DNA of 64,000 nt from Takakia lepidozioides (taxonomy: Eukaryota; Plantae; Bryophyta): positions 47,926,001 to 47,990,000 of the forward strand of contig CM060732.1 in NCBI GenBank assembly GCA_030704615.1, given 5' to 3'. How positions within the stretch are numbered: position 1 is the stretch's first letter; the number at the start of each line of letters is the position of its first letter. Position numbers and translations under genes: made by a program. The notes below the pieces were generated by a model. That model ran no database searches. It was given only the letters and a program-made list of their open reading frames with translations, and was not told where the DNA came from. This document shows, one piece after another, positions 1 to 24,000 of this stretch.

Positions 1-3000
1 TCCAGCACAAGCAACTGCTTCATGGCATCGCCTTGATCCAAGATCTCCTCCGTTGTAGATGCAAGCCCAGCGGGATCGGGAACCGCAGGGACTTCCTCCT
101 CATTGTACAATGAATGCGTGTTTGCTGCTGGCATATCCATGGTTGATGCAGTAACTGAAATAACCGGGCTGTTCAGAATACTCACATCTGGCCTCGCAAG
201 GACCTGCTTGTGGGGAGACAAAAAAGCTTGAGGGCCCCCGTAAGACGACTCCCACTGCCCACGATGCTCAATAGCCTTGACTACTTCACCCCCGCCTGCG
301 ATGGCCTTCTTCGAGGGAGCTGCAAGGTGTACGCGGCCGAGCTCGCTCACAGTTGGCTGGATGGAGCGATCGACATAAGGGGTGGCTAAGAACTCCCCAT
401 CTAGATCCTCCAGAACGCCATCCGCGATAGGAGGTAGCGGCAAACAATCCTGCAATATGTCCGCTTTCTCTAATAGCGTGCTAAGACCTCCGTCTGAAAA
501 CTGGCTGCCTCCCTCCAAATCCTGCAGACAATGAACGCAAGCATAATGAAAAGTAGAGCAAAAACAAAAACAAACAGCAAAGCTTAGAAACAACAAAGCC
601 ATTGGCACGGGGGCTGCTATTTCATGAGCGGCATGAGCATGAGCGGGATAAAAAAAAGCATGAGCGGGCCATTGTCTGTCCACGGAAATAGGGTTAGGAG
701 GCACGGAAATAGGGTCATGTGGACTCGTCATAGCAATGAAATGCAACATTTTATTGCAAATTTTGTGGCAAGCCACGTCTATACAAGTGTGTCCTAACTG
801 TCATAGCAGGAATGGGAACTACTCTCCTACACCTTCCGAGGAACTTGGCCCTCCTTCTTCCTCATCCCCCTCATCCCCCCCATCCTCCGAGCTTTGTGAT
901 GCATCGGTTGCAGTATGCCTCTCAAAAATGCCGTCCTCTCCTTGGGGGACTGTCCACCTCACCTCCTGGGAATCTTCTGCCTCTTCTCCCCCACTTTCCT
1001 CAGCATAATCCAAGACAAATCTACGAGCCCGACGGGCTCTAATAGCTGCTGCCTCCTCCCTCATCTTCATTTTCTTGAGGCTTGCCTCGTCTAAAATCTG
1101 CTGTACACGACTAGGTTCGGAACACCTCCTAATGGACACCGAAGCAAGCCGGGCAGCATAAGTAGGAAGGATGTAGTCCCTTTCTGGACTAGGCATGAAA
1201 TCCCCCCTGGCAAAAAAAGGCACGTTCCTCCTGCCCATGAACTCCGGTGTAGACGTCCTTCCTGCCGTACTTGGCATCCTACAGTAAGAACAAATCCACT
1301 TCAAGAATGTCAATACCAGCAAAAGCAGAAAGGGTTTTCAATGAAATAAGAGAGCAAAGGGAGGTGCCTCACGAAATCTGGAGGCAACTTACAATGCGAC
1401 CACTCACTCGTACACCGGGGGCTCCTCGGCCTCGATCCCAACTTGTTCCTCCCCCTGCTCCTTCTCGGATTTTTCCTCATCCTCCGAGGATGCCTCTTCC
1501 TCTTTTGGCAGACGTTCAGCCGCTGCAAGTTCCGAGTTGTGGAGGGCAGTATCTGGCTCGAAGGCGAACACATGCCTATCGGACAACGTCCCTGCCCACA
1601 TTGAAGCACCTGAGGAACAAAGCAGGCGGTTAATAGTTTGCAGCATGCAATTGCAATCGGGCCAGGGGACAAACTGAGCACGTGAAGGCTTACCCGTGCC
1701 GCATGTGAGGTCCAGAATCCGCCCTTGGACATCCGAGCACGTCTCCATGAGGGTTTGGATGAAAGCAGGGCTCCGGGTCCGGCTGTACCGCCATGGTTTG
1801 CCTGTCTTTGTGTCCTTCGGCATACTGGAGTGGGGCACATAGTTGTAGAGGACATCTTAGGTAACAGGGTCCACAGCGGCATCAACAAGACGACCGTCGT
1901 TGCGGAATTTGAACGTAGACCCTCTCTTCACAAAGCAATATGCCTCAAACACCAATGTCTGCACATCCACAAAAGAGGGATCAACTCCGGGATCTAGTTT
2001 AGATACACCACAATATGAGGTGAATGCAATAGATTGATAACTTACACTTTGGCCCTCTGTTCGCAACCCCTGTGTATTGATGCAGAACCATTTTCTGAGG
2101 AGGACCGAGGTGACACTTTTTGGTGTCCATCTTGCCACCGCATTCTCTATGGTCTTCCCTCTTGTGGCAAGGACAACCACACATCCACCGTCATCCAGGA
2201 GCATCCCCGCCAGCCCAAACCGGCTTTCCAGTAGTCCTCAGTAAACCTGTTCCAGGTGGGCACACCATCCAGGCCCTCCAGCAGCTCCCCATCTGGAATG
2301 TCGAGGAGAATCATATCGCAAGTTCTCTCCACCTCAACCCCCCCCCCGAGTGCTCTTGCAATCTGTGCTCACAGCCGTGAAGAATTCCATCATGGCTTCA
2401 AAACCAGGGGTGTCTTTAGGCTCTGTACAGGCAGCCCTCTTCTTGGCTTTCCCTTCTGCTCCGCCAGAGACTTGCTGTGTGCCACCTTCTTCGCCCTGGC
2501 AGCAAGAGCGTCAAGGAAGCTCTCATTGACGCATTGGATGATGGTTGGAGGTTCTAGCTTTGGCCTGTGCGTAAACGTCACCGCCGAATACCGCTGTGTA
2601 GGCTCGCCCTCAAATGCCAACTTCTTGGCAGAGCCAGCCCCACTCCGAACTGACTTGGGAACCCGGACGACCGGTGACTTGGTAGCAGCAACAGCAGTCG
2701 CAGGACCTTAAACAAAGTCGTCGTCCGAGTCACTCCCTTGGGTCCCCTCTTGCGCCTCCTCCGATGCCCCGATGGTTTTCTGTTTTTTGGGTGTTACTGT
2801 ACTCACCTGTTTCCTTGTCCTTTTCCTTTGGCCTTTATTCTTCTCATTCAATTTCTCCTGAATTCCTGCCTGAGCAAGCTCTGCCGCTTTCCTGGAGTTC
2901 GCAAGCGCTTTTGCCTCTTTTGCACCCAGCGGAGGCAGCGGAGCCCGGTTTCGTCGGGCCTCAGCATCCAGCTTCAATTGAAACTCGGATGGGTCGAGCG

Positions 3001-6000
3001 AGCCGGGCGGAAGGTCCACATACCAATGGCAATCACGCAAATGTTCCAGATGCCACTCCTTCACAATATCGTCAGTGTACATGGAGTCAGCCCCAGGGTT
3101 CCTCCATGCCAGGAAGAATGGTGGCTCGAAAGACAAATAACCTTTCTCCAAAAGGGAGAACTTGCAGTACCTGCATTCATGAAAAACACAATGAGGTCCC
3201 TGAACTGCAAATTCGGCACCATTTTCCCAGGTTGGGGCGGATCTGACTGGGCCTAGAAATGGAAAAATGGCTCCGAATTTCGGTTTTCGGTGACAGCCAC
3301 CCTAGGGACTTAGCCATCTTGGGAGCCCGGAACTGGAAATTCGGCGCCATTTTTCCCGGTTTGGCCCGAAAATGGCTAAGTTCCAAAACTGCCAGGGCCT
3401 AAAACTCGAAAAATGGCGCCGAATTTCGGTTTTTTGTGCCAACCACCCTAGGGACTTAGCCATTTTCGGAGCCCTGAACTGGAAATTCGGCGCCATTTTC
3501 CCTGGTCCGGCCCGAAAATGGCTAAGTCTCAGAACGGTAATAGGGCCTAGAACTGGAAAAATGGCGCCGAATTTCCAATTCAGGGCCAGCCACCCTAGAG
3601 ACTTAGCCATTTTCGGAGCCCTGAACTGGAAATTCGGCGCCATTTTCCCTGGTCCGGCCCGAAAATGGCTAAGTCCCAGAACGGTAATAGGGCCTAGAAC
3701 TGGAAAAATGGCGCCGAATTTCCAATTCAGGGCCAGCCACCCTAGGGACTTGGCCATTTTCGGAGCCCTGAACTGGAAATTCGGCGCCATTTTCCCAAAG
3801 ACCAATTTTCATGCGCCACATGAGGCCTCTAACATCCTGAAATGCAAGGACTTGAAAGGAAGGCATCGCGTATGTACCTGTACAGAAGGCGCATTGCTGC
3901 TTTGTCCGCGTTCGGCTGGTCGGTGAACTCGTGGCTCCGGCGGGCATGGGGTATCTCCCGAAAGAATAGGTCGGTTTTGTAGAGCAGAAAGTACCTCGTC
4001 ACATAGTCGCGTAGGCTCTCTGCTGCAGGAGAAATCTCCATCTTGAACTGATGTGCTTATGTGTCCAGCTGCTCTTGCGCATTCGTCGTCACCTGTGGAG
4101 ATTCTCCATCAGATCGTTTTCCTCAAAAAATACAATGAATCCACCCCCTACAAGAGTAGAAGCGCCAAACAAAGCGTGGGGAAGTACCTGAAACCACCAT
4201 GTCATGCGGTTCATCCACATGTCGAATGTGGGGTCAGACAGTTTGTCCGGTTTGGGGAAGCTCCACATGTCCCTTGTACTTTGGGAACCATTCCAGATTT
4301 GGAGCCACCGGGTTGTCCAACCACCCAGCATATTCGTAAGCGCCAAACACCACAAAAACGAGTTGTTGCCACCACAATTTGGTTAAGAATGTATCACCTT
4401 TTCTGTTGCATCCACACAGGATGTGGCTAGATGATGGAGCTTCTCCAATGTCATCGTGGGCTTCAGAGCGCGGGAGTAGTGCTTCCCCACCTCCACCAGA
4501 AAGTCGGCACCAAGGGCGGGATCAGCTATGGCCACGTACTTTATCATCCGCGACTTGTACTTTATGCGGGCCCTGGCCTCCGCAGCTTTGAGATACGATT
4601 CGAGTGCCGGGAGGGTTAGATTCTTCTCCTCTGACTCCATGTAGAACCTCCGCGCATGTGCCAAATCCTGCTGAATTTTTGTCTGTCAAGAATGCGCACA
4701 TAAGATTAGAGATCCTGCTCAACACTTTTTCTTCTATTGGGGGAGGAGAGACACATTAGCTCAACAAAACAGTGAGGAGCTTTACCCGAAATATGTAGTC
4801 CACCATGGCGTCCATGCTCAGCCTATACCAGGTTTTGTCTGCCTTTGCCTCCGACTTGCGCAAGAGGTCGGCACTGAGCGAATTGGCAAACTCTTGCACC
4901 CCCTGCTTCCCGACATCCTTCACTTGGAAGAGCATATGGGACAAGTTGGTGGCAATGAAGGCATTCTCAGTCACCCTGCAATGCCACATTTCCATCAAAC
5001 AATACTGAAATGGGAATTTTCAACAAATATGAGGATTCGCAATGAAATGACTTACAATCGGATGGGTCCAAAAGCAAGAGGCGTTGTAACTTACGAGTTG
5101 ATGTCCGCCATTGCAGCTTTGAGAAGACTGCGATCTTTGGGCCCCGCAACCTTCAGCACAACACACTCCACGGCGAAATGCCAATCGAGGTCGTTGGGGT
5201 GGGCTTCGGCTATGTGCTCCATCCATGCCAGGAGGCGATGATTGCCGTCCCACACGTAAAACATCTTACCGGACAAGTGCTGGAAAAGAGGATCAGTAGC
5301 AATCGTTCTCTCGAACTCCTCATTTCGCCTTTGCCAATGGGGACCCCATTTGTCCACCTCATCGGAAGTGTGGGCACAGGAAGCTCCGTGGTCATTCTCA
5401 ATGGAAACGTAAAACGCGGCAGACCCCATTCGATATCCATCCCGGAAAGAGAATTTTAGCTTGTCGATATCGCCTGGGAGGGCAGGTCTCACCACCTGCA
5501 ATGACACCAAGCAGCAAAGGGGAATCCGAAGCTTGGCCGGGTACACCATGCCCCCCAGCACCCTGCCAATGTTGCTATGGGTTGCCTCCAACATCTTGGC
5601 AGCGGCCAACTTCATATCCGCCTCCAACATGACGTCTGCTGCAGAGGGTTTCTCCGGCAGCCCACCAGGACGGCCAAATCCAGCCTGTATGCTGCGGGTT
5701 TGGGGCCTGGGGATGTCCGGGAGGATGTCATCCTGGTCAGAAAGCTCCCTGTCGTCCTCCTCAACATGGTCAGCCACCGGCGAAACCACCTCGAGCACTC
5801 TCCCCGTCTGTACTGCCCTCTCCCCGGCTTCACCTCGAACTGGCACAATCCGTGCTCTTTCTGGTGTTCTTTCCTCTCCTCCACTCTCCACCGTATGGGT
5901 AATTGCAGGGGCTGCTCTTGCCCGCGATGGTCTAACCGGTGTGTTACTGCCTCTTTGTGGTGTCTTGGAGGGATCCACCGTCTCTGTGCATCCCTCGCTT

Positions 6001-6536
6001 ACATTGGCATCTGTCATTTGGGCACCCCTGGCCTCTTTAGTGGCCTTTTCTCTTTCCTCCTGGCTAGCATTCTGTCTCGCCTGTTCTTTTGCCCTATCTT
6101 TTGCCCTCTCACGGGCTTTCTGTTTCTTACTAGGGCTAGCAGCAGGGGAGCCCTCCAGGACGACCACCTTTGATTGAGGCGAACTGACACCCTCGCGCAC
6201 ACTGCTCACTCCCCCCTCCGCAGCCTGTGACGGCTCTCTCGCCGGGGATTGCATGTGCTTAGCTTTCTTCTTCTTCTTTGCGTGGGCGGGCCCTACTGCA
6301 TGTGCATCAACAACCTCCATTGCCGGATCTGCTGTCCTCACGTCCTCACGCCCTTCACCTGCCATGCCGCCTGCACCAACCTCCCCAATGCCTATTCTGT
6401 CGTACTCTCGCTGCAGGTCCTCCCGTCCACCAACAAAAGGTTTAAGTTTGCCCTCTCGCCCCAAGTTGGGCGATTCAAACATGCGATGAGTTGGAGCTGT
6501 CGATGATACCACCAGCGTGCCGGCTCGTCGTCACTC
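1..6536 (-). pseudogene. Multi-exon gene encoding a ParB-like domain fused to a beta-class N4/N6 DNA methyltransferase-like domain; disrupted; 3' end runs off the window
   Basis: Minus-strand ORF pieces join through GT-AG introns (4976-5094, 4683-4785, 3171-3877, 1959-2045, 1610-1693 and others). ParB/Srx motif FYVWDGNHRL (DGNHR at 5235-5249). MTase motifs in beta order: DMILLDIPDG (DIPD at 2291-2302), LLDDGGCVVV, FEAYCFVKR, then RSPAFIQTLMETCSDVQGRILDLTCGTG|ASMWAGTLSDRHVFAFEPD. In-frame stops (e.g. 2708, 1857, 1404) and a frameshift near 2210. The last visible exon (521 to <1) is open. Confidence 0.8.
3195..3797. repeat. ~147-bp tandem repeat (~4 copies) inside an intron; each unit carries inverted GGAAATTCGGCGCCATTTT arms
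   Basis: Unit marker gccc(t/g)gaactggaaattcgg at 3325, 3471, 3618 and 3765; lies within intron 3171-3877. Confidence 0.9.
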
Positions 6537-7484
6537 TGTCATTCCCAAAAATCGTGAGAACCAACATCGGTGCCAAAACCAGCATCGCAACGAGCAGCGC
6601 AACCACCATAGCAACAATCGTGGAACAACAATGAAAACAAAACAAGTTTAGGAAGTATGGAGTGCCATGGAACAACAATGAAAACAAATCCAACCAATGC
6701 CTAAGAATGACATGCACAAGCAGCCTTCTCCAGAGTTGTCGGCTTTGCACACGCATTGCAAACTATGTAAGGTTCACTCAACCGGTAATATGAAACACGA
6801 TGAACAAATGATCAGGAATTCCATAAGACGGGAAAACAGAGTGAAATGTTTTGAAGGCACTTCATCTGCTCAGACATTCTTCTCAGCTCAGCATGGATTT
6901 CCTTAATTTTTAACCACTCAGACCTTGATCATTCTTCGCAACAGCTCCTGCTTTTGCGATGCAACCATACGCTTCCAGCGATGCCAGGATGAAGATGCAA
7001 AAACAAAGCGAAACAACAAAGCGAAAGCAAAAGCAAAAGCGAAAGCGAACAAAGCGAAAGCAGAAGTGGCTTGCCTGAGAGTACTCGGCTTCAGTTGGCG
7101 CGGGTTGTGAGCAAGACACTGGAATCTCCTGCTGGAGCTTAAGTTTGGCCATGCGAGAGATTGGCCGTCGTCCAAAGTACAAAGCTCTCAACTTCCGCCG
7201 CGGTCTGGATGTGGGGTCTCTCTCAGGAGAGCCACGCCCTTCAGGCGGCATAAATCCCAGCCAAAAAGAAAAAAAATCTCAGTTTTTTGGGGTACATGCC
7301 TCGAATAGAAGTTAATCCAAGTTTAGCATCAGATTTAGGGTACGTATCAAGGAAGCAACCGCGGAATCCCTGTATCGCCAGCCCGAATCAAAACGGACGG
7401 CGGTGGACATTTAATGCCCAACTACGCAATTAAATGTCGGATGAAGCCCTCCCTGTCGGATAAAATATGACGCAACTCGGCCCC

Positions 7485-8310
7485 GCGCAGCAGGATGGGA
7501 ATCCGGCGTCGGATTTCCATCCTGCAGGTAATTCGGAGCGCGGATAAATGGAAATCCGGCGCCGGATTTCCATCCGCCAGGTAGGGCGGCGCGCGAAATT
7601 TCCGTCACGCAGGTAATTCTGCACGCGGATGGATGGAAATCCGGTGCCGGATTTCCATCCGCCAGGTAGGGCGGCGCGCGAAATTTCCGTCATGCAGGTA
7701 ATTCGGAGCCGGATGGATGGAAATCCGGCGCCGGATTTCCATCCGCCAGGTAGGGCGGCGCGCCAAATTTTCGTCATGCTGGTAATTCGGAGCCGGATCC
7801 GGCGCCGGATTTCCATCCCCAGGTAGGGCGGCGCGCAAAATTTCCGTCACGCAGGTAATTCTGCACGTGGATGGATGGAAATCCGGCGCCGGATTTCCAT
7901 CCGCCAGGTAGGGCGGCGCGCGAAATTTCCGTCATGCAGGTAATTCTGCGCGCGGATGGATGGAAATCCGGCGCTGGATTTCCATCCGCTAGGTAGGGCG
8001 GCGCGCCAAATTTTCGTCATGCTGGTAATTCGGAGCCGGATCCGGCGCCGGATTTCCATCCCCAGGTAGGGCGGCGCGCAACATTTCCGTCACGCAGGTA
8101 ATTCTGCACGCGGATGGATGGAAATCCGGCGCCGGATTTCCATCCGCCAGGTAGGGCGGCGCGCCAAATTTTCGTCATGCAGGTAATTCGGAGCGCCGAA
8201 TTTCCATCCTGCAGGTAATTTCAAGCGCCGAATTTCCGTCATGCAGGTAATTCGGAGCCCGGATGGATGGAAATTCGGCGCCGAATTACCATCCTGCAGG
8301 TAATTCTGAG
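7485..8310. repeat. Tandem array of ~85-bp units (~243-bp higher-order repeat) built on the 30-bp palindrome GGATGGAAATCCGGCGCCGGATTTCCATCC
   Basis: ggaaatccgg cores at 7550, 7635, 7719, 7877 and 8120, with shorter variants between them. Confidence 0.9.
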
Positions 8311-8419
8311 TGTGGCCGCTTGGTTTTTCGGTGAAAAACACAGTAAACTATAGTTTTGTGGCTGAAGTCCACTTTTAGACACGTTTTTCATGGACTCCTC
8401 GACTGCTAGAGGGAAATCA

Positions 8420-9290
8420 GAACGGCCCCGGACGGAAATTCGGCGCCGTTTTTCCATCCTGGGAGGTTTTTATATCGTCCAATTTTCGGCCTCACCACCC
8501 GACCGGACTTCCTTTGATGGGGCCCGGATGGAAATTCGGCCGAATTTTCATCCGGGGGATGCTCTCTGGCGGACAGGTGTCGTCCTCTCCGCCCGAGACG
8601 ACTTCATCCGGGCGTCCCCTGTTGGATATTCGGTGCCGAATTTCCGTCCGAGGGTTGAAATGTGACGGCCAGGTGCCGGCCTCTCCCCCCTCCCCGACTG
8701 CATCCAAACGGCCCTGGATGGAAATTCGGCGCCGTTTTTCCATCCGGGGAGGTTTTTATGTCGACCAGTTTTCGGCCTGACCCCCCGACATGACTTCCTT
8801 TGGGGGGGCCCGGATGGAAATTCGGCGCCGAATCTCCATCCTGGGGATGCTTTCTGTCGGACACGTGCCGGCCTCTCCGCCCGAGGCGACTTCATCCGGG
8901 CGTCCCCTGTTGGATATTCGGTGCCGAATTTCCGTCCGGGGGTTGAAATGTGACGGCCAGGTGCCGGCCTCTCCCCCCTGCCCGACTGCCTCCGAATGGC
9001 CCCGGATGGAAATTCGGCGCCATTTTTCCATCTGGGGAGGTTTTTATGTCGGCCAGTTTTCGGCCTGACCCCCCGACCCGACTTCCTTTGGGGGGATCCG
9101 GATGGAAATTCGGCGCTGAATTTCCATCCGGGGGCTGTTCTCTGTCGGATAGGTGCCGGCCTCTCTGCCCCAGGCGACTTCATCCGTGCGGCCCCGGTTG
9201 GATATTCGGTGCCGAATTTCCATTCGGGGGTAGTAATGTGACGGCACGTTCTCCCCTTCAGCCGACATCATCCGGACGGCCCCCCACTTT
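8420..9290. repeat. ~287-bp tandem repeat (3 copies) with several GGAAATTCGGCGCCG-type motifs per unit
   Basis: Marker ggtttttat at 8465, 8751 and 9039. Confidence 0.9.
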
Positions 9291-9605
9291 CTGACTGCAT
9301 ACCGTTGGCAGTTATTGCGCAAAGACCAGGGGCCGCATTCCGGAGACAAGGTTCATTAACACTCTGACTGTGGATTTTTGAGATAGTTGGCTCCCTGGAT
9401 TTGGATCAGGCTTCGTCGCTCGGACAAATCGGCACCGCATTCCTTCCCATCGTTGCATCCCCCTTCTACCAGGGAGCTTGCCCGCACGCCATCCTGGCAA
9501 TCTTGTGTGCACATCTCCCATGGCGGAAACCCGAGCGCTACAGTATACTGCCTTCCTCACGAGCATAGAGCTTCATTTCCGTGCAGAGGGGACATCTGCC
9601 GGGTG

Positions 9606-12326
9606 ATGGAGAAATATCTGTGCGTTCGATACCACCTGAAACCGGGGTCGGTTTTTTTGGAGGAGGAAAGGAAGGACTCAAACGGCGTTGTTGTTGAGAG
9701 TATTGTTGTGCTCCACGATGATTTTGGTGATGGCAGGGAATGGCGAGTTCCACCATCGGACAGCGTCATATACAGGGCTGTTAGGGACTTCATTTGCCCG
9801 CCAAATGCACCTTCTATCCTGGCGCCTTCAACGAAACAATCCGCGAATCAGAGAGTGGGTACCTCAAAGAGAGAAGTCCGCAACGAAGTAAATCCAGAGC
9901 CAAACCCATCAATGAAGACGAGCAAGAACCGGGTTGTTCACAACCTATCCGACTCAGACGAGGTCATGGAAGTTCCGAGATCGTCCTGGAGATCAGGCAA
10001 GTCCTCAATGGACGTCAGTGGACGAGGGAGTCATATTCCCAGCACGAGCACCGCAGTTCGATCTATTCTTGAAATTCTGCGAGGGCTTCACATGGAGGGA
10101 CACCGCTCGGAGCTGGCCGGGCTGGACTACAACAAGTTCGCAATTAAATCGGTTACATGCCTTCCCGCAAACGTTGACGGTAATATCTTCTTTGAGTTCC
10201 CTCCTCGGGAGGACTACTCGAGGGCGTCCGGAATGTTGACAAATATGGATAGAAAACATGACGGTCATCCTTGGTGCGTTACCAAAACCACCAGCATGAA
10301 GATGCTCGATGGTGTGCGGGTGCGCTACGTTGTTTGTGCGGGCGCGTTGCGGTGTTTCTCCCCAACTTGCTTCCACTTTAAATCCAGAGGTCACAGGAAC
10401 GAGACCGATTGGACAGGCACAACTCATCAACCATTTCAAGCTCAGGAGAAGGTTCCGAACTCCACATTTAAGTGTGCGCATTGCAAAGAACCACCACACT
10501 ACATGTCTGTTTGTAATGCCAAGCAGTTCTATGTGTTGCACCGTTTCCCTGACCTCACCCGAGCTTGCATACACGTTGGTTCCCATTGTCACAAATTGGC
10601 GAGGGGGAACTCGCGGGAGGCTGCCCACGAGGCAGAGCAGCTCGTTTAGGAGGAGGTTAAGTTGAGACCAGGTGCCAAACCCAAACAGATACAGCTCCAA
10701 GCCGCCCATAAGATGGCATTGGCCAGAATTATGTCGGAAGACGGCTCCGACAGAGTTCCTCTCGATGACAAGGAAATGGAGGCATTGCTGGAGTCGGTGT
10801 CCCACGTCTGTTCACCGAATGTCCGAAACCACATTGTGTCATGCAAACAGAAAATTGGGCGTGGCTCGGATATGCACTCCATTCTGGAGATGAAGCGACG
10901 ATGTGGATATGACTACATTCATGGAAGTCGGTTTCCAGGACAAGGGACTGAGGCAGATCGTTGTTTCGTATTCAAAATGTCGACGTGTGGACCTGGCAGC
11001 GGCGTCGAACTGGTCGACAGGATGACGAGTGGGGACTTGTCAAACAGTTGGGTCATGTTCGACCATATCAAGCGAATTACAAATCACCAGTGGGTGACAA
11101 TAGGTGCACATGTCTACGACACCCACTGCAGGATGCTAATGACAATTGCTATTTGTGAGATGAAAGGAGAGGACACACAATCGGAGATGCTTCTTTGGCA
11201 GGGAATAAACGAACAGATGGCCAAGGCGGGATTGCCCCCTCCCAATTTCCGTGGTTTCATGGCGGACAACGCACAAGCAAATTGGGCTGCCATCCGAAGG
11301 GTGTACGGGCAAGACCCCAATGTTCTCATGGAAGGCAAGGAGAGATCTTGTGGGTTCCATTTTCTGCAGAGCCTTTCGCAGTACACAACCAGGCTCGTGG
11401 CGCCAGATTTCAGAGAGGAGCACCGTTCCATGTGTCTTGCGTGGAAGCGCGCTCCCACCTTGGATGATGCAGAGACACAGTTTGCATGTATACGGGCTTG
11501 GTGGACATCGTCAGGTGCTGTAAGGAAATCAGACGAGGGAGCAATGGTCAGTTGGCTAGCATGGTGGCATTATCGTTTCCTCCAGTTCGGCGACTATATG
11601 CGGGAGGTGAGTTGCACAAATTCGCGTCCCGTTGAATATTATTCTAGGCATTATTTGTGACTTGCTTGTAACCTCAACATGTGCTTGTGCGGGTAATGTG
11701 TCTCGACTCCGACACCGACATGCCCACGACAAACATGGCCGAATCAGTGCACTCTTCCTGGCGTGCCTCCTCTGCGGCGCATCTGGTGGACATCCTCACT
11801 GCCACAACGGAGGACATTGTGAGGTCAATTATGCAGCAAAGCAGGTACAACGAGTTCTTGAAAGGGAAACAGTGGGGCTTGGGGCCGGACAGGCAGGAAA
11901 TGCTGATGCGGACTGCCTCCAGATCGAAGAATCCTCGAAAAGTGGGCGGCGGCCTTGAGAGAGGGCCTTCGGGACACGCCATTGCTTCGAAGAGGCCAAC
12001 ATTTGGAAGGAGATGTTCATACCCGTCTAGTGAGACGAAGACTTGACGAGGCACCTGGCGGAGAAGAGGATTCATGGCGAGCTGACAAGAATATTCGCAC
12101 GCTCCCTCGTGGTCCTGTGATGTTGCCCGAGGAGGTATCGTCGAGCACCGCAAGTCCTGCACGTTCAAGATCGTCATCTCTTTTGAGCACAGGGCGCGTG
12201 CCCCGGCAACATAACGAGCCATCTGTAGTAAAGCAGTACAACATTCCCATTGTGGAGACAAGAGTGTCGGAGTCACAGTGGAGAATTGCGAGGACATTGC
12301 CGGCATTTCGAGGGAAGTGTTGCGCT
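9606..12326 (+). pseudogene. Mutator-like (MULE) DDE transposase with an N-terminal GCM/WRKY-like Zn domain; disrupted and 3'-truncated
   Basis: Cys/His-rich segment (CAGALRC..C..CAHC..C..HVGSHCH); WVMFD (D at 11061); FMADNAQANWAAIRRVYG (D at 11265); CGFH (CxxH at 11349); TTNMAES (E at 11741). One in-frame TAG at 10647, an intron starting gtgagt near 11607 with a degenerate acceptor, and a frameshift near 11945. Cut off at 12326 by Gypsy sequence. Confidence 0.8.
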
Positions 12327-12822
12327 ATCCCAGAGCAGACCAAGGGCGAAGACCTAATGGTGAAGAACTGTGTTACTATTGTAATCAGGTAGGACATCGT
12401 AAGGCAGCTTGTCCATTCTGGATTAGACACCAGAATGAGATGACAGCTCCTATGAATGAAGGCCCAGTGGTGGCAGCTCACATGGTTATACCATGTGTTG
12501 TACCAGAAGTAAGTACAATGATAGTAACCAGAAGCAAAGCTAAATTAATACCTCCGGTAGATGAGGAAGGTGATGATAATGAAGATGGCAGTGATGTGCC
12601 TGAAGATGATGAGGCTTGGAGAGATGAGAAGGAACTGCACAAGGAAGTGGCAGATACCATAAGGGAAATGCAGAAGAATGCTGATATTCCTATGGCAGAT
12701 TCCTCTGATTATGAAAGAGAAGAGGAAGTGAGTGAGGATGAAGGGAAGAAAGAAGCTGCAGAAATGCAAAGTAATGAAGGGACTTTGGCTTAAATAATAT
12801 GCCAGTCCAAAGCGGAGATTAC
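12327..12822 (+). mobile_element. 496-bp Gypsy gag fragment (CCHC knuckle and acidic linker), near-identical to 20415-20910
   Basis: Direct match from atcccagagcagacc to cggagattac; CYYCNQVGHRKAAC zinc knuckle. Confidence 0.9.
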
Positions 12823-15800
12823 TGTAGTGTGAATACAGGGGAGTGACATTAAATTTTTGTCTTACTCACTGAGATTCTGCATTGCTACAAAGGAAGGGCC
12901 CTGGTACCAATGTGAAAATAGGTTGAGTTGTCCCTGCAATTTATTCCATACATGTTTCTTGGTTACATCATGGGAACGATGGGGGACTATTGGCCAAGAT
13001 GAAGATGCTCAATTTATTTCATACATGCTATGGGCGGAATTCATCCCTGCCTACAGGTTATTTCATGGGCACACTATGCTGATACTTTGCCAGGATGAAA
13101 GTGGCTAAGTCGTGACCAGGCGTATTTTCCTCCGGAGGATGAATGGATTACATCCATGCTTTCTAGATGACTCCCAGGAACGAGGACGAAGGATCCAGTG
13201 CCAAGGATGCAATGAATTTGTAATTAACTCTGTTAATGAAACCTAGCACGTTTTCCGTTCGTGAAAATGGATGACTTTCATCACTGGTGATTACCCTAGA
13301 AACGCGGGACGAGGAAGACGAAGGGGAAGATGACGGGCGCTCTGAGCAGATGTTGCGAACAGTGGAATTGGCAGGGCATTGTGTCAAGGGCGATTGCATC
13401 TACACTGGGGCATTCTGACTTGCATTAAGAGAAGTGTTAATGTAGAGTATAAGGGCACAACTTGGTAATCTGTGCAGCAGGGGAAGCGGTGCCGCCATCT
13501 TCTTGGTAATGATCAATTTCTGGAGGATATGCTTACAGGGAGATCGGTGTGGCATGCGATGGAGCAATCAGTTAACAGGTGGTGCAGTCGCTGCTATGGT
13601 GAATGGGTAGCTTAGGGCTTGCTGGAGGATAATCGTACAGGGAACAGCTTGGAAGAGTTGTGCTCAAGCCAGGTGAAAGGAGGCGGTGCTGTCACGAATC
13701 TTGTGCAACCACCAGAGCCGCCATTGCCTTGATGAACATGATCATGGGAGGATGAGCATGCAAGGGAAACGGCCAGCTGCCAGAGAATAGGGAGGTGGGG
13801 TTGCTGGCACAATCAATGGAGAGTCAGGATGAAGAGCAGCTCGACATAACGAGCATCTGCCAAAGCGAATGAGGGATTGGCTTGTGGATGGTGACTCAGG
13901 TTATCTGTAAATAAGGAGGTAAAGATTGGAATGTACAGATGCAGGAAGCTTTCAGATGATCACTGTCTTCTTGTTATAAGATCATATCAGATCTTAGGGT
14001 AGATTTGCTTAGATAGTGAGATAGGGTAGTTAGTTGGCAAGCTACAGGGGTGTTGCCATAGGCTGAAGCAGGGCCGTCATGACTTAATGAACGCTGGAAT
14101 CGTCAAATCCAGACGACAAGAGGAGTTAAGGTAGCTGCTGACGGAGATGGTGAGGTGCCATTTTGGGCAGGCAGACCCATCGCTTCACCTGGAGTATAAG
14201 ACAGATAAGTTCGTAGATACTAGCCTTCTTCTTTTTGGCATTTAGGAATTGTTGTTGTTAAATTTTGGTAGAGACTCTCAAACTGAGAGCATGCTGAGGA
14301 CAGGAAAAAAACTTTGAGAAATGAAATGGGGACTCTGGACTTCAAACCAGGATGGGGTGGAGATGAATGCACATGTCTGTAGGAGTGTTGATTGAGGGCA
14401 GATGTAGTTCACCCACACTGACAGAATGCTTGCTGTTTGTTTTGTTTTTGTTCCTTTGGCTTTAGTATCATGAATCTGCATACAATGCGGCTCTGGGATT
14501 TTGATGATTAGATGTAATGCAATCCAGTGTAGTTGATGTGAGCACTAGTGAGGGTTAGTTGTAACCTCTTTGAAATCAGAAAGAGGAAGAGATGGATGGG
14601 GCTGCAAACTGACACTGATGTGGAGTTTAGAACTGGTTCAGAGTGGACTCAGCATTTGAACTTTGTGGTTCAAATCTGAAAGGGCAAAAGTGAGCTGTTG
14701 GGGTGTTTAGATGCAGATCTGTAGAAGGGTTGGGAACTGACTGACAAACTGGGTTGTCCCTGGAGGCAAACAGTGTGAAGGGTCTGTTTTGGGTGAGAGA
14801 AAGATTGATGGAATGATCATGTCTTGTGTGACCAAGGTTTGATTCCAAGGCTGGATTCACTGGATACATGGCTGAATGTGTTTGCATTGCATGTAGATAG
14901 GCTGCTGGTTGGAAGAAAATGAGCCAGGGAATTTTACAGCGGGAAGGAGAGAGAAAAGGTTTGGGAAGGGAGAGAGCTGCTCAGTAAAAGGGGTAATGAG
15001 GGATGGTCAACTGGGAGATAGAGGAAAAACCATAATATCTACAGAGAATCACTAGGCCTGTAATTCATGGCAGATCTGAGTTGCCTTCCTCTTATCAGTG
15101 ATCTCATTACAAAAGGGGTTTCAACGTGTGTTGCTCAAGGGTGATGCCCACATGGGTCGCATTTAGCTCCGTCATAGGGCTGGTTGTATCACTGAAAATA
15201 TCACAGCAGCCCTATTGGTGCTGCAATTGTATAAAGATTATGTAAATCATGAACAAGAAGGATTCAATCCCCATCCATGTTTTCTCTTCCGCTGCGGCGT
15301 GGATGAGGATATATGAACTCTGATCATGAACGATAGGAGGGAAACCATAACCGTGTGCCGCTGGTAGATTGCTAGGTCGTTCTTTTTATTGGAAGAAGTA
15401 CAGTTAGAATTACATAGAAGGGGATTTATGCCCCCTTCTTTTGGTATCGGAGCGGGCCGGTCTTTCTTCCGGGAGATGTAGGATTTAGTGTAGGAAGGTG
15501 GAGGAGCGATTTGCGAGCAATGGTGACTAACATTCCATTTTACGGGAAGGAAGATGAGGATGTTTACAGCTGGATCCAGAATCTGAAAAGGGATGGTGAG
15601 GGCCGGAGCTTTGGCGAGCACAAGCTATTTATATCGGCAAGGCTGAATCTCAAATCACAAGTTGATACCTTGTATCGCATGCAAAAACCAAGACCCATGA
15701 ACTAGCATGATTTTCAAGTAGCCATAGTCTTGAAATTTGGAGAAGAAGGTCAATCAAGAATGAGGAAAGTGATGTTAGCAAGGAAGTTTGATGGGTTAGA

Positions 15801-17085
15801 TACAAATGTGGAAGAGTCTGCCACAGGGATAGAGGAGAGATTGTCTCTGATTGAGAAGGATAATCACGAGGAGTTCACATCAGTGAGTTCCATTGATTGT
15901 GAGCCAAGATCAGATAACAAAACAACGTCACAGAGTTGCTTTAAGGTGAAGCCACAAACCAGCGAAGTCCCTGCAATGCTTCCTTGAGGTCTCAATTTGA
16001 ACAACACAAGTCAGCAAGTGGAGTGTCGCACTACATGTCCATCAAGTCAGAATCAGATCCGAAGTGAAAAGAATCACCGGCTGGGGCTGCAAGTGGAAAC
16101 ATGTGGAATGCAACATTCATGCTGCGAAATGTTGGGACAATGGGAATCGAGGAGCAGCAAAAGGATGGAGTTCGAAAGTGTAAGCTCTCTTGGCACAAAC
16201 TGTGTGAATGTGTTTTGTGATATGGAAGAAGAGATCTTGGAAGACATCTTTTGTTCAACGGAGAGTCAATCAGGTGTCAATGAAGAGTGTACACCTAGAT
16301 TGCATGTTCCTGTGCAGATCCCAAACTCTTCTACAAGGGCACATGAAGATCAAGACATACTTGGCGAGTTTGGGCATAGCGTTGCCAACTCACCAAGGAT
16401 TGGTGGTACAACCTGTGGAGTGAGTGTCATGAGAGAGGAAGATGACAAGGAGTCTTGGGCAGATCTGATGGGATGGGTGGAGGAAGAGTGTACGTTGCTT
16501 GCTCAAACCAGAAAGGGTCTGGATCAAGATGCACACCTGGATCAAGACATACTTGGGGAGTGTGGGAATAGCGTTGCCAACTCACCGAGGATTGGTGGTA
16601 CAACCTGTGGAGTGAGTGTCATGAGAGAGGAAGATGACAAGGAGTCTTGATGGGATGGGTGGAGGAAGAGTGTACGTTGATTGCTCAAACCAGAAAGGGT
16701 CTAGATCAAGATGCGCACCTAGATCAAGACATACTTGGCGAGTTTGGGCATAGCGTTGCCAACTCACCAAGGATTGGTGGTACAACCTGTGGAGTGAGTG
16801 TCATGAGAGAGGAAGATGACAAGGAGTCTTGGGCAGATCTGATGGGATGGGTGGAGGAAGAGTGTACGTTGCTTGCTCAAACCAGAAAGGGTCTGGATCA
16901 AGATGCACACCTGGATCAAGACATACTTGGGGAGTGTGGGAATAGCGTTGCCAACTCACCAAGGATTGGTGGTACAACCTGTGGAGTGAGTGTCATGAGA
17001 GAGGAAGATGACAAGGAGTCTTGGGCAGATCTGATGGGATGGGTGGAGGAAGAGTGTACGTTGCTTGCTCAAACCAGAAAGGGTT
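12823..17085 (+). mobile_element. Probable fragment of a second, degenerate LTR retrotransposon with a gag remnant
   Basis: Starts with TG exactly where the Gypsy match stops; gag-like IPFYGKEDEDVYSWI...FQVAIVLKFG near 15530-15740. No second LTR seen. Confidence 0.45.
16348..17085 (+). repeat. 192-bp (64-codon) tandem repeat, ~4 copies
   Basis: gatcaagacatac at 16348, 16540, 16722 (10-bp deletion in the preceding unit) and 16914; cut by the LTR at 17086. Confidence 0.9.
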
Positions 17086-17958
17086 TGTTAGAGGGTTGCT
17101 TGGGACTTAGACGCTTTTATGGGTTCTGTGGGGTACCCTTAATTTTTGCGCAGACTGAGACCAACAAGAGTCTTGGGGGTGGCAAGAGCAGGCTTTAGGG
17201 GGGTCACACAGCCCGACACAGCTTCGCACAGCCAGTCACAGCCCGACACAGCTTTACACAGCTTCACACAGCCCGACACAGCTTTACACAGCCAGTCACA
17301 GCTCGGCAAAGCTTGACACAGCCTGTCACAGTACATGTGGAACAGTTATCATTGACAGGGAACGACTGTGATGGGACGACATCTGCAGAGGGAACGTGTT
17401 ACTTTAGGGGTGACGGTTAGTTAGTTAGGTGGTTAGAACAGCTTGCGGGTAGATTAGGCAGAGCAGCAACAAGAAGGGGATCACTTCTTGAGGAGGGCGA
17501 CTTGTTCAGGAGAGGAGGAGACGAAACGGAGAGCGGAAAAAAGTGTACAGGAGATGATGACTTGAATGAGGCTTAGTTCATGCAAGCTGTAGAATTATAC
17601 AGTAGGATAGAATAGAGACACCATGGCATAGGCATGATACATGATTAATCTTAATCCGATACTGAATCGATACAAACATATTATGTAGAGAGACACGAGA
17701 GAAGTTGTGGAATGAATGCATGATTAATTGGAACTTAGTAGATACTGAAGCAATCTGATACTTTAGTATACACGGTAAGGTAAATTGATAACATGAAGGC
17801 AGGAAAGAATACAAATAGGAAGCACAACCATGATTCACTAGCTGCAGGTCATGACTAATTGTTCTGAGCGGGCCGAGTGCTTAGAGATATCCAACTCTTC
17901 TATCTTGGAGTTTCCACCTCGGATAGCGAAGGGATGGGTGAGTAAAAGCCGTTCGACA
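17086..17958 (+). repeat. 5' LTR
   Basis: tgttagagggttgc...gttcgaca; homologous to 29081-30011. Confidence 0.9.
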
Positions 17959-17960
17959 TT

Positions 17961-17978
17961 TGGCGACCATACTGGGGA
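17961..17978 (+). promoter_or_regulatory. Primer-binding site
   Basis: tggcgaccatactgggga begins 2 nt after the LTR terminal CA. Confidence 0.75.
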
Positions 17979-18566
17979 TCTGGGTCATGAACAACCAGAT
18001 GTGACAGGCATCTTGTGGGATCATGGTGGATGGAGAATTAAAGAATTTGATGTGAATCAAATTCCCTGTGAAACTGAGAAGGAAAGATTGTCCAAATAAT
18101 TCTTTCAGAGGTTCTTGGAATTGCCAGACGGTTGTAAAGAAAACATTCTCAAGAGAGTGCATGATGCTGACCCTGAGTGGGGTCTGGAGAAATGAGTGAT
18201 AAAGATTTATCAGGTGGCTTGTAGAGGAAGAGCACGTTGGTTACCAACGTTGGTTTATGTGATAGCGTTGCTATCCATTAAGCGAGTAGAGTTTGAAGGC
18301 TGGGAGGAAAAGAAGGTGAATGTTTATACTCATATGCATGAAGAGCTTGTACTGGTAAAGAATTGGATTCCAAAGGATATTCTGTGGATCAAACTCACAC
18401 CAAGAACAGCTTTCCAGACTTGTTTGCCATATGGTTATATGGTAACGGAGACTTCTAGTATAGCCAAGGGTGCATTGAAGCTTGAAAGAAATCCAGGCAT
18501 ATACGAGAGATACTACAGAAGAGAGTTTTGGTTATTGCCACATTAAAGAAATGAAAGACATGGGAC

Positions 18567-21046
18567 ATGAGTGATGAAAGAGAAGTTAGACTCCAGAGAT
18601 ATTCAGCAAAAAGAGAAAGTTATCTGAAAGCTAATTATCCATATCTTTGGGAGAGAGGAATAGACATAGGGGAATCATCTGGACCTCTCACACCATTAAG
18701 ATCAGAGAGTACATCACCCATACCGGAAGAACTAGAGTTGGATGCCACTCCTTCTTTTTCTTTGCAAGAAAGATTAAGGGAATTGGTACGGGAAGAAGAT
18801 CAACCACGAGGTGAAAGATCTGAGGTACATCCCTGGATAAAAGATTTGACAGAAATCTTTGATAAGAGTTGGCATGGAACACCAAAGGCAGGAACTCCAG
18901 TTTCTAAAACAGAAGACGAAGAAAGAGGAGAGGATGTGGCAGAGCAAACGGAGAGTTCAGACTCTCCAACACCATTGCAATTGAGTTACATGAGTGAAGA
19001 AGAAGAAACCCAAGGGCAGAACTTGGAAGATGAAAACAGAGAGAAGAAATTGGAAGAGGAAGAGTATGAAGATGTAGACCCAACAGCTGAGACTACAACC
19101 AGGACATCCCAACCCGTTGAACCTGGATCAAGTGGAGCACTTGGATCACAGGCTAACGAAGGTGTCGGCTCAGGGGGATCAGGCGAGCAGCCTGGATCTG
19201 GCTTTGGGGGGACAGGGAGTGTGGGAAGTAGTGCAACTGGAGCTGGGAATACTGTGAATATCGTGGGGCCAGTAGTAGGGAGTGCTCAAGGGCCACCACT
19301 GGGTGGAAGATCCACCACAACTACAACAGGTCCTCAAGGACCAGCACCAGTAAGGGGGCCAACATCTATCAGTGGGCAGAAGGTAGGGCCACAGATGGCG
19401 TTACAACCAACACGGGCAAAACCACCTTTTCCAATATATTCAGGAAAAGGGGATCCTGATGTACACATTAGCCAATTTGAGCACATGTGTATTGTGAACA
19501 ATGAGAATGGCGATGATGCCAAGATGACATTGTTTCCTTGTTCACTTATCAAGAAAGCAAGTGAATGGTATGCAAGATTCCCTGATAATCATTTCCTAAC
19601 CTGGAATGGCTTGAATACAACATTCCGAAATAGGTTCAGGACAAGTAAAACTGAGGATGAAGTGTATGGAAGTTTACAACAGTTAAAGCAAAAGAAGCAT
19701 GAAACTGTTGAGGAGTATATGGAAAAAATGGAATTGATGATGAAAAAGCTGGCTGTTGTACCAGCACCAGGTTTACAGAAGACTTGGTTTGTGAGTGGAC
19801 TAAGACCAGAGTTGCAAAAGAAAGTGGATATGTTACCCCATAATACAGTGGAGGAGGCATTTGAAACAGTGAACATAATTGAGCAATTGTGAATGCTCAG
19901 GAGAGAGAAAAAAGATGATGAGGACTCTGAGGATGAGTCAGATGAGGAAGAAGAGCACGAGCTTAAGAGGAAGAGTAAGAGGAAGGAAAAGTTGAAGAGG
20001 GATAACTATGAGAAAAGATTAGAAGAAATCTTGAAGAAGTATGCCACAGAGGCTGCAACACATTGGAGGAAGGGTGTTTGGTGTGCAAAATGCCAGAATG
20101 AAGGCCATACCACCACTGAATGCCACATGAAGGAGAAACATTGTACTATCTGTAAAATGGATAACTATTCTACTGAGAATTGTTACTACAACAGAAGGAC
20201 AGCAACAAGAGAACCTAGGCAAGTAAGGGTGCATCAAGTGCAGCCCCAACCAAGAAGAAACAGTGACCAGGACCACTATGGTAGGCCTGGTGGTTATAAC
20301 AATGGCATGGAAGGGAGAGGTAATCCAAGAGGGAATTACCAAGGAAATTCCAGAGGCAACTATCAGGGTAATCCAAGGGGAATTACCAGCCAGGGAATCA
20401 GGATTACAGAAACAATCCCAGAGCAGACCAAGGGCGAGGACCTAATGGTGAAGAACTGTGTTACTATTGTAATCAGGCAGGACATCGTAAGGCAGCCTGT
20501 CCATTCTGGATCAGACACCAGAATGAGATGACAGCTCCTGTGAATGAGGGGCTAGTGGTGGCAGCTCACATGGTTAGGCCATGTGTTGTACCAGAAGTAA
20601 GTACAATGATAGTAACCAGAAGCAAAGCCAAAATAATACCTCCAGTAGATGAGGAAGGTGATGATAATGAAGATGGCAGTGATGTGCCTGAAGATGATGA
20701 GGCTTGGAGAGACGAGAAGGAACTGCACAAGGAAGTGGCAGATACCATAAGGGAAATGCAGAAGAGTACTGATATTCCTATGGCAGATTCCTCTGATTAT
20801 GAAAGAGAAGAGGAAGTGAGTGAGGATGAAGGGAAGAAAGAAGCTGCAGAAATGCAGAGTAATGAAGGGACTTTGGCTGAAGTAATATGCCAGTCCAAAG
20901 CGGAGATTACCATTAGACGGCTATTGGCTGTGGCACCTTATTGTAGACACAGGCTGTATCAAGCAATCAATCGAATTGCCCATGTGACAGGGAACACAGA
21001 CCTGAACAGCAAGGTGACCAGTTATAATGTGAAGCCGGAAGAGTGA
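18567..21046 (+). pseudogene. gag (capsid plus two Zn knuckles), disrupted
   Basis: YSGKGDPDVHISQF, LFPCSL..A..WY, LKQKKHETVEEY, WFVSGLRPEL; CAKCQNEGHTTTEC; TGA at 19890 and a later frameshift. Confidence 0.88.
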
Positions 21047-24000
21047 GAAACAGTCATGGACTTTGATGATTCTATGCCAGTAATCCATTGAGAATTGGAA
21101 GCACAGAACTAACTGATGTACTGATAGATGGAGGCTCTGGAGTGAATATCATGACAGACCAATTAAGGCAGAAGCTTGGTCTAAGTAACATGAAACCAGC
21201 CCCGTTTACAGTAACAATGGCAGATCAAATAAGTGTACAGCCATTGGGATTGATAAGAGGAGTTAAGATACAGATTCAAAAGATGATCTTTAAGATCACA
21301 GTAACTGTATTGAAAATGGATGAAGTCATGGAAGCTTACTCCTTATTGTTGGGTCGACCGTGGCTGAAACAGGCCAGGGTATTCCATTACTGGAATTCCC
21401 AGTTACTAACTGTGCATGATGGGATGCACAAGATACAAATCACCACTAAGAAATCTAGTAGATTACCTGCTAGGAGAAGACCTCGAGGGGTCAGGGAGTA
21501 TGACTGGAGGGGGGACTGGATGAGGAGCAGGAAGCTACCCTGTTCGCTGCACACCCAGAGTGGGAGCAGGTTGCAGAGATGCAGCTGGAAGGCCTAAGTT
21601 GTTTAAAAGGTATCTGTTGTGGTGTAGTGATAGCAACACCAATTGAAGGTGAAACAATCAGTTACCCACCACATTTGTATGAAGAAAGAGAAGGAGAAAT
21701 GGAAATCCTAGAGAAACCAGCCACTGTGAGTCTACAGGATGAAGTGGTGACTGGTTGGACAATCACATGAGTATCTGGATGATTTCATGCAGGTGTTCTT
21801 GGATGATTTCAGTGTGTACAGCTCTAAGAATGAGCACTTGCATAATTGGAGTTATGTTTGGCCAGATGCAGGATGAGAGGTCTGTGTCGCGCACCTCACT
21901 TCGGTAAGCTCCCCTTCAAGTCATAGTTACTCGCTTTGATGCGCGCGCCTGACTCCCAACCTGGCCGCCCGGGCCAACTTGGAGCTTCGGCTGCTCACCG
22001 GGACATAACGGTCCCCCTTCGCTTCCCACTAAACCCTCCACCTATTTGGGACTAGGAGAATTCCCTTTGGTAGATGGCAGTCCGGAACAGCTCCCCACTC
22101 TTTGGTCGCTTCCGGCTCGCTCGCTTACTCACTAGTTTTTGGTCCCAACGGGCTTGCACCGTTCTCGGGGTCACTACTCCCCTTATATATACTTCTGTAG
22201 CTGTCCGCGGGGGTTTTCACAACCAGCCATGCCATTTTATGGCGAACCACCACGAAAACCCTCGACTCTCGGTGATGAGTTGCGGTGAGTCTTGGCCCAC
22301 TCACCACGGCCCCTATGGGACCGTGATGAGTCCCAAGACTCCCCACGACTCCCACCACGAGGTCTCCGCCCCCATGGTGAGTCCTATGCCACCCCCACTA
22401 AGTCCGCTAACTAGCTACCACCACCCCTTGTGGAGCCACCCCCACCGCAACCCGGTGTGCGGGGCTCCACCTAGTGAGCGCCTCCGCTTCCCTGAGTGCC
22501 TTGGGCACTCAAGGGTGCTTCAGCCCCCCCCCCATACCTATCGCTGCCGCTGCCCCCACCACAGGGGCAGCCCCTCGTGTGTCCCGACCCCCTGCCCTCA
22601 AGGCAAAGGGCCGCGACAGTCTGGGCCTGAATCCAGAGAAGTGTACTTTCAGTGTGAACTCAGGGGTGATTTTGGGACACATTGTGTGTAAGAGGGGACT
22701 TCTTGTGGATCCCAGGAAGACAGAGGCTTTTGAGGAACTTACATTGTCAGTAACAACTACACCTGTGCTGATTAACCCTCACTGGCATGTAGTATTTCAT
22801 GTTCACTGTGATACCTCAGGAGAAGCGTTGGGAGCGGTGTTAGCCAAAATGTTACAGGAAATATAGATCACCGGTGGTACTATGTTAGCAGGTTGATGAA
22901 CAGTGCTGAAAGGAACTATAGCACAACTGAAAGAGAAGCACTGGCAATGATTTATGCAGTCAAGAAATTCAGGCATTACCTATTGGGAAGAAAGTTTATG
23001 TTTTACGTGGATCACCAGGCTCTGATATATCTGGTGAACAAACCTTTGATAAGTGGAAGGATAGCAAGGTGGTTAATAATCTTGCACGAGTTTGAGTTCG
23101 AAGTTGTTTACAAACCTGGCCGTTTGCATCTTGTGGCAGATCATTTGTCACGCCTATCAACAGGAGAGCCCGCCACACGAGTAGACGATCAATTGCCTGA
23201 TGCGAGTTTATTTGCAATGGAGGTGCAAGGAAGTGTAGATGAATGGTTAGATTGGCAGTGGCCAATCAGATACTACCTTACTCATGGTCAGTGCCCACCT
23301 AGTTATGGTAAGGAGCAGAGGAAGAGAATCGCTATCAAGGCTTTACCTTATACTATGGTAGGGGGGCAGAATGTATAAGCTAGGACCTAATGGAGTACTT
23401 AAACGATGTTTGTACCACCATGAAGTAAATAAAGTTTTGGAGGAAGTTCATAAAGGAGTGGCTGGAGGTCATTTTGGAGAAGAGACTACCAGTAGAAAGA
23501 TACTACTTGCAGGTTACTAGTGGCCTACTTTGTTCAAAGATGTACACAAGTATTGTCAGAGTTGTGATGAATGTCAGAGGCTAGGACCTTTGCAGAGATC
23601 TGGGAAGATGGCTTGGCATCCTACGATGCCTACTGAACCATTTCAGAAATGGGGACTAGACTTTGTTGGACCAATTAACCCCCGGCCAAGAATACACAGA
23701 ACAAGTATATAATTACAGCCACTGATTATACTACGAAGTGGGTGGAAGCTAAAGCTCTGAGGAACAACACAGCCAAGTCCACAACAAAGTTCCTGTATGA
23801 GAACATACTTACACGATTTGGCTGTCCCTTGGAATTTACCAGTGACCAGGGAAGTCACTTCATCAATGAGACCATTGAACTATTGACTAAAGAGTTCATG
23901 ATTGTGCATAGGAAGAGTACAACGTATTACCCACAGGGTAATGGGCAGGCAGAGACTACCAACAAAATACTATGTACTATCTTGGCTAAGATAGTCAATG

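Follow-up and report, generated by a model that had tools for sequence, protein, structure and literature searches.

Does a transposase gene form one mobile element with a neighbouring gene of prokaryote-type domains and the palindromic repeats that lie between the two, and what would such a gene do for its carrier? The question is raised by a 64,000-nucleotide stretch of the moss Takakia lepidozioides (contig CM060732.1, positions 47,926,001 to 47,990,000), hereafter the window. In its region 1–12326, a Mutator-like element (MULE) transposase on the plus strand stands head-to-head with a spliced gene on the minus strand, hereafter the cargo, which encodes a ParB domain and a β-class amino-methyltransferase (MTase) fold. 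An initial annotation had described these two genes as flanking palindrome arrays, a description borne out by the protein motifs, the GT-AG introns and the arrays at 7495–9245. The region holds one copy, now decayed, of a Mutator-superfamily transposon that is present in high copy number and has complete relatives of 11–13.5 kb, and our data support the transposase, the arrays and the ParB-MTase gene as parts of one mobile element family.

When the ParB domain and the transposase were used as separate queries, both led to the same head-to-head pairs in relatives. Such pairs, with protein identities of 30–50%, were found at L001–L003 (ENA ERZ25073694), at L006 and L009 in the liverwort Riccia sorocarpa, at L007 in the fern Adiantum nelumboides, and at L093; further homologues are present in moss-associated assemblies. 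L006 is a complete element of 13.5 kb (2362–15849) with a 10-bp target-site duplication (TSD; GTGAAATTTA) and degenerate ends that begin with G, and L007 is a complete element of 11 kb with a 9-bp TSD and a short degenerate terminal inverted repeat (TIR). Their end scores, which combine the TSD and the degenerate TIR, are 48 and 42, respectively, against a null median of 21, and lie above 89 of 90 null scans, the remaining one being higher. The TSD/TIR scan found none for L001–L003, L005, L092 and L093. Three Riccia copies are 97% identical, lie on two chromosomes and have a common right end, and a DNA run of the species from which the window comes has 22,997 contigs that align to 5.8 kb of the cargo gene. 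The high copy number and the dispersed 97%-identical copies rule out a single-copy host gene. Together with the conserved layout and the TSD-bounded complete relatives, they also turn the membership of a single element, which had been assumed from the window alone, into a supported assignment, and the co-occurrence of all parts in complete copies with TIRs and TSDs of about 9 bp is as the initial annotation had envisaged. Assignment to the MULEs is supported by a homologue of the window transposase that is nearest to MULE clusters (0.93–0.94), by the DDE residues and a CxxH motif after the second D, and, in the relatives, by TSDs of 9 and 10 bp and degenerate TIRs that begin with G.

The ParB domain family comprises 481 clusters at 50% identity with E-values below 1e-10. 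Searches of viral contigs for ParB-family relatives found none, and the JGI metagenomes yielded no close relative of the window’s motif IV exon. The single prokaryotic match, L091 (CADCWO010000058.1, from a cyanobacterial metagenome-assembled genome), holds the cargo with plant-like exon spacing and was taken as probable contamination with plant DNA. Support at the RNA level, for which the initial annotation had suggested looking, comes from one contig of a run guessed to be RNA, which joins 2046–2343, 1692–1958 and 1401–1607 without the two GT-AG introns; a close copy is therefore transcribed and spliced. The same run has zero depth at 3328–3715, within an intronic repeat array described below.

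The window copy itself is broken, and its termini are not visible, as had been noted from the sequence. The transposase (9520–12326, plus strand, putative start) combines a Cys/His-rich N-terminal domain with a MULE-type DDE domain, whose catalytic residues are D (11061), D (11265), CxxH (11349) and E (11741). They lie in the motifs FDH, MADNA, CGFH and NMAES, the first three of which are kept in homologues. The reading frame has an internal stop at 10647, its 3′ part is decayed, and at 12326 it is cut by a piece of a retroelement gag with a zinc knuckle (12327–12822, plus strand), which lies outside the element and is 96% identical to 20415–20910. The multi-exon cargo gene (1–6585, minus strand) has an uncertain start and continues through further exons after the MTase domain until it runs off the left edge of the window. 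Its introns are of the GT-AG type. Other copies have one extra base at 1968, 2219, 2450, 4313 and 6521, and the element as a whole shows internal stops. The remainder of the element was not found elsewhere in the 64 kb. In a Pfam scan of the window’s open reading frames (ORFs), neither the transposase nor the ParB and MTase exons gave a match, and homologues were needed to identify them. The observed/expected CpG ratio is 0.60–0.85 in the coding parts of the element versus 0.38–0.44 in neighbouring DNA, a retention that fits protection.

The 22-bp palindrome core occurs in four exact copies and, at up to five mismatches, in 26 copies, all of which lie inside 1–12326; none is found in the other 52 kb, and none is expected from Markov shuffles. 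The copies are located between the two genes and in a cargo intron. Between the genes, a first array (7495–8300) has a period of 85 bp and the palindrome variant ATCCGGCGCCGGAT, and a second (8421–9245) has periods of 96 and 288 bp, the latter a higher-order unit, and the variant ATTCGGCGCCGAAT. The earlier claim that the same core fills an intron of the MTase gene also stands: a 147-bp tandem array at 3249–3796 holds eight copies in alternating orientation, which are lopsided and have three to five mismatches.

Across the family, at least six different palindromes of 14–22 bp are present, one per subfamily, at equivalent non-coding positions: in the intergenic space, in introns of the cargo (in the window, L002, L093 and L010) and 3′ of genes. 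The window, L001, L002 and L093, whose ParB domains are 40–52% identical, have the core TTCGGYRCCGAA in common. L003 and L092 have TCTCGGGCCCGAGA, L006 has CAGCGGANTCCGCTG, L007 has CCTGCGTTGACGCAGG, a second element in L010 has TAGTCGCTCTCCGACTA, and L086 has GTTTCACAAGCGAAAC. The 12-bp core is kept across distant lineages while the bases that flank it diverge, which suggests selection for a putative binding site. In L006 and L009, palindromes also cluster near both ends of the element; the TIR motifs of L006 and L007 are sequences unlike the internal palindrome. The second element in L010 (767–4900) is a divergent Riccia cargo with motif IV DLPT, and a palindrome of its own is present six times within the extent of the gene. 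At L086, palindromes of the GTTTCACAAGCGAAAC type (3726–4081) precede a fossil cargo, and they resemble the parS consensus of bacteria, apart from two additional bases in the centre.

One locus separates the cargo from its usual transposase. At L092 (3004–11000), a ParB-MTase cargo stands head-to-head with an uninterrupted 684-aa ORF for a hAT transposase. There is no MULE match at this locus and no TIR pair that would mark the hAT as a nested insertion. The cargo is sister to that of L003 (support 100/99) and carries the L003-type palindrome, and the motif therefore appears to follow the cargo. The L003 transposase, in turn, groups with those of L001 and L002 (94/97) despite the different palindrome, and the two observations together point to the cargo as the palindrome binder. 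Independence of the cargo from transposase and arrays, which the initial annotation had considered an argument against a common element, is thus seen at L092 for the transposase and not for the palindrome, which is retained there. A separate palindrome array (TTGAGGTGGACCTCAA, seven copies) is located at L092 246–898. ORFs with a DUF7869 domain adjoin the elements at L092 14062–17400 and L005 19670–20977, those of L092 having a palindrome of their own (ATCGGCGGTCCGCCGAT, three copies), and these ORFs are possibly another type of carrier.

The cargo protein is composed of a low-complexity N-terminus, the ParB domain, a helical region, the β-class MTase fold and an acidic tail; a full-length homologue from Riccia sorocarpa, P0184, has 1207 aa. 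In the window, the ParB/Srx nucleotide-binding domain lies at 5097–5585 on the minus strand. Its motif WDGNHRLLA contains the GxxRxxA signature (DGNHRLLA), which a motif tally finds retained across homologues. A model of the N-terminal domain has predicted local distance difference test (pLDDT) values of 85–98 over residues 1–160 and matches KorB (Z = 8.0, r.m.s.d. = 2.8 Å, 95 residues), PadC (Z = 7.3) and a Pnob8-like ParB; ParB and Noc head the Foldseek list, with weak E-values. Judged by this model, the domain has the features of a ParB/Srx fold. No ParA-like gene was seen in any element of the family. By language-model features, the ParB domain with the helical region (P0184 165–670) is nearest to fungal DUF3723 clusters (0.85), a weak lead.

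The MTase part has the motif order IV followed by X-I-II, as in the β class, and its nearest relatives are phage and bacterial PF01555 enzymes. In the window (all minus strand), motif IV lies at 2294–2305, and motifs X, I (DLTCGTG) and II (FEPD) at 1527–1802, where an intron at 1610–1693 splits them. Motif IV, which aligns onto the DPPY of CcrM, had been read as DPPY/SPPY; the window has DIPD, and thus departs from the catalytic pattern (D/N/S)PP(Y/F/W). Among 66 aligned homologue rows, D or N is found in 61, P in 53 and a final E in 38, the others ending mostly in S, H, T or D. The aromatic residue is absent in 63 of the 66 and present in three, a fern copy with DVPF and two with Y. In N4CMT, this residue has been modelled to stack the flipped target base (PMC10406627). 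The notion of an active writer of N4-methylcytosine (4mC) or N6-methyladenine (6mA), as put forward at the outset, is weakened by this loss. The acidic residues that contact S-adenosylmethionine (SAM), the D of motif I and the E/D of motif II, are retained in liverwort and fern copies and in those of the moss type, and motif I is relaxed in some members (ASTG, AGGWG). The fold is probably still able to bind SAM and to dimerise, and in most lineages it is probably a pseudo-enzyme, a binder or scaffold, and not a canonical 4mC/6mA writer. An AlphaFold model of the MTase domain (pLDDT 41) was too poor for a fold search. Kinship to MpDN4MT1 or N4CMT is supported neither by motif nor by architecture. 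The Riccia cargo proteins P0184, P0182 and P0185 carry the UniRef name ‘Trimethylguanosine synthase’, probably an annotation error prompted by the MTase fold. A further C-terminal exon is conserved, with LPxYA and an acidic [FY][IV]DD[E]A motif that is present in nine of the 11 loci, against a background of 0.02 per region, and reads FVLDYAE in the window (999–1019, minus strand). This tail presumably resembles the acidic motifs of Spt6, Spt5 and Mrc1, and it may contact chromatin factors.

From these features, we propose that a dimer of the cargo protein would bind the palindrome of its own subfamily as ParB binds parS, that the ParB nucleotide switch would load the protein, which would perhaps spread along the element, and that the loaded protein would keep the element expressed or mobile despite host silencing by 5-methylcytosine (5mC), comparable to the action of VANC on VANDAL elements. 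The MTase fold would serve as a binder or scaffold in most lineages. Taken jointly, self-recognition of the parS kind, loading by the switch, relief from 5mC silencing and a pseudo-MTase make up a proposition that we judge to be evenly balanced between right and wrong. A more far-reaching version, which we hold only tentatively and consider doubtful as a whole, would see a portable eukaryotic parS/ParB system in seed-free land plants: a clamp gated by cytidine triphosphate would load on the palindromes, slide over the whole transposon and shield or re-mark it, the cassette would move among MULE, hAT and perhaps Sola elements, and some lineages, such as the fern with DVPF, would still write 4mC or 6mA.

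Several observations weigh against the proposal of a self-recognising, protective cargo. The transposase swap is a single locus, L092, whose element ends were not found, and the window cargo is not resolved within the L001/L002/L093 clade. At L005 (7554–17900), a Riccia transposase is accompanied by 17 copies of the palindrome GRTCTCGCGCGAGA, and no cargo lies within 10 kb. Twelve distinct loci from moss metagenomes extend far enough upstream to show a transposase, and only three of them have it, although most of the other nine are fossils with stops and CpG ratios of 0.1–0.4; L008 is a cargo without transposase, yet its ParB exon is open. The region that follows the ParB domain has no recognised helix-turn-helix; the model there has low confidence and gave no specific match. 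The CpG retention may stem from young age instead of protection, and demethylation of a MULE can also be the work of its own transposase (bioRxiv 2026.08.24.746577). At L005, a side observation concerns the palindrome itself, which has the half-site of the palindrome in L003 but less spacer between the halves.

Part of this evidence would also suit other explanations. The cargo might be an active self-marking writer, which binds the palindrome and deposits 4mC or 6mA through a non-canonical motif IV, thereby blocking 5mC or licensing the element. The conserved D and P of motif IV, the β-class fold with its SAM-contact residues, the fern DVPF and the two Y copies, the contig with spliced MTase exons, and the 4mC enzymes known in a plant and a rotifer all speak for it; we nevertheless consider it unlikely, with the base-stacking aromatic replaced by E, S, H, T or D in nearly all members and motif I relaxed as well. 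Alternatively, the palindromes could be sites of the transposase, following the logic of subterminal repeats, and the cargo a helper of transposition without sequence specificity that bridges or compacts the long element. The AtMu1 transposase binds and activates its cognate elements (bioRxiv 2026.08.24.746577), and both the clusters near the ends of L006 and L009 and the cargo-less palindromes of L005 agree with such a role. However, the motif stays with the cargo across the switch from MULE to hAT, TIR motifs and palindromes differ in sequence, and palindromes also reside in cargo introns, so that this explanation appears distinctly unlikely.

A regulator of the KorB kind, by which the cargo would repress or time its own element and spare the host rather than counter silencing, would account for sites between two divergent promoters, for the plasmid repressor KorB as the top structural match, and for a dead MTase fold, which suits a pure binder. 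Sites in introns and 3′ regions do not speak for repression, and the high copy number and CpG retention fit activation better; we give this explanation a small chance of being right. The cargo could finally be a neutral passenger, a captured gene next to self-amplifying satellites to which it has no functional link, as the broken window copy and the many fossils might indicate. Conservation of the layout, the domains and the 12-bp core over distant lineages, while the flanks of the core diverge, largely refutes this explanation, and its remaining probability is very slight.

Compared with known systems, the proposed cargo-based self-recognition has close counterparts in algal transposons, and the initial view of a categorically new system cannot be upheld, as accessory genes for ParB and an N6/N4-MTase, accompanied by arrays of inverted repeats, have already been described there. 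In the red alga Bostrychia, the Plavaka elements PAG2/PAG3 have a ParB-domain gene adjoining tandem arrays of inverted repeats, together with an N6-MTase accessory gene, and the cassette moves between transposon types, including Mutator elements of Chondrus (bioRxiv 2025.02.11.637652). The likeness lies in the architecture, that is, ParB and amino-MTase domains on a DNA transposon with inverted-repeat arrays. The Bostrychia genes, however, are separate and belong to red algal EnSpm/Plavaka elements, with ParB fused to a 2-oxoglutarate (2OG) oxygenase and the MTase to SET, whereas the window family has ParB and an MTase fold with degenerate motif IV in one gene, on a land-plant MULE and probably on a hAT too. 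As far as the published description of the giant DNA transposon Sola1-1_Ec32 from Ectocarpus covers it, this element has a 1104-aa fusion gene of ParB and N4/N6-MTase on the strand opposite the transposase, and the suggestion is that the accessory protein attaches to the element that encodes it and modifies this element (PMC12477816). By that description it is like our family; Ectocarpus, however, is a brown alga and the transposase is of the Sola1 type, and the passage concerned mentions neither palindromes nor a catalytic motif. The concept is thus already proposed for algal transposons, there as a hypothesis, and the authors of the Bostrychia study state that VANDAL alone among transposons has been demonstrated to bind its own sequence and modify it (bioRxiv 2025.02.11.637652).

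VANDAL elements are MULEs with an accessory gene, VANC, and with motifs that are specific to each family and have been multiplied by tandem repeats within introns and in intergenic and terminal non-coding DNA (PMC5735166). The analogy drawn initially fits in its logic, since the window family also combines a MULE and an accessory gene with a subfamily-specific motif multiplied in non-coding tandem repeats. In contrast to the 14–22-bp palindromes found here, VANC motifs have 8–9 bp and a single orientation (PMC5735166); the cargo proteins scanned gave no VANC-related Pfam match and have prokaryote-type domains, and anti-silencing is proven for VANC and proposed for the cargo. The family resembles VANDAL/VANC in layout but is not a member. 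With bacterial ParB/parS, KorB and Noc it shares the ParB/Srx fold, GxxRxxA and clustered palindromes of about 16 bp; it differs in being eukaryotic, spliced and fused to an MTase fold, with neither ParA nor a recognised helix-turn-helix. The β-class amino-MTases (CcrM, M.RsrI, phage N6_N4) have the same motif order and, unlike the cargo with its D-x-P-E/S/H/T/D, DPPY or SPPY as motif IV. MpDN4MT1 (TSPPY) and N4CMT (SPPY) are host genes, unlike the transposon-borne cargo.

A literature search, which covered subscription journals only in part, found no land-plant description, no motif–cargo pairing and no degenerate motif. The elements described here extend the system to a fern and a liverwort, the latter a relative of the model Marchantia in which copies are complete, young and bounded by TSDs; the algal ParB cassettes sit in organisms that are difficult for experiments. 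In at least six subfamilies, the family yields a protein matched to its palindrome, and it includes a natural swap of the transposase. The pairs, the swap and the complete elements make two questions testable, namely sequence-specific escape from silencing and the action of a ParB clamp on eukaryotic chromatin. The published hypothesis changes if, as motif IV warns, the MTase domain does not act as a writer. Should the binding prove true, nature would have supplied in these pairs a set of orthogonal tools for sequence-specific work on chromatin.

Beyond the element, 12327–24500 of the window contains pieces of long terminal repeat retroelements (zinc knuckle; similarity to an integrase region at 22900–24440), and 10-bp CACAGCC arrays are found in this neighbourhood at 17206, 24640 and 29200. 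A 303-bp tandem array at 60503–62400 has a minus-strand consensus that resembles pentatricopeptide (PPR) repeats, and a related piece is located at 33599–34001.

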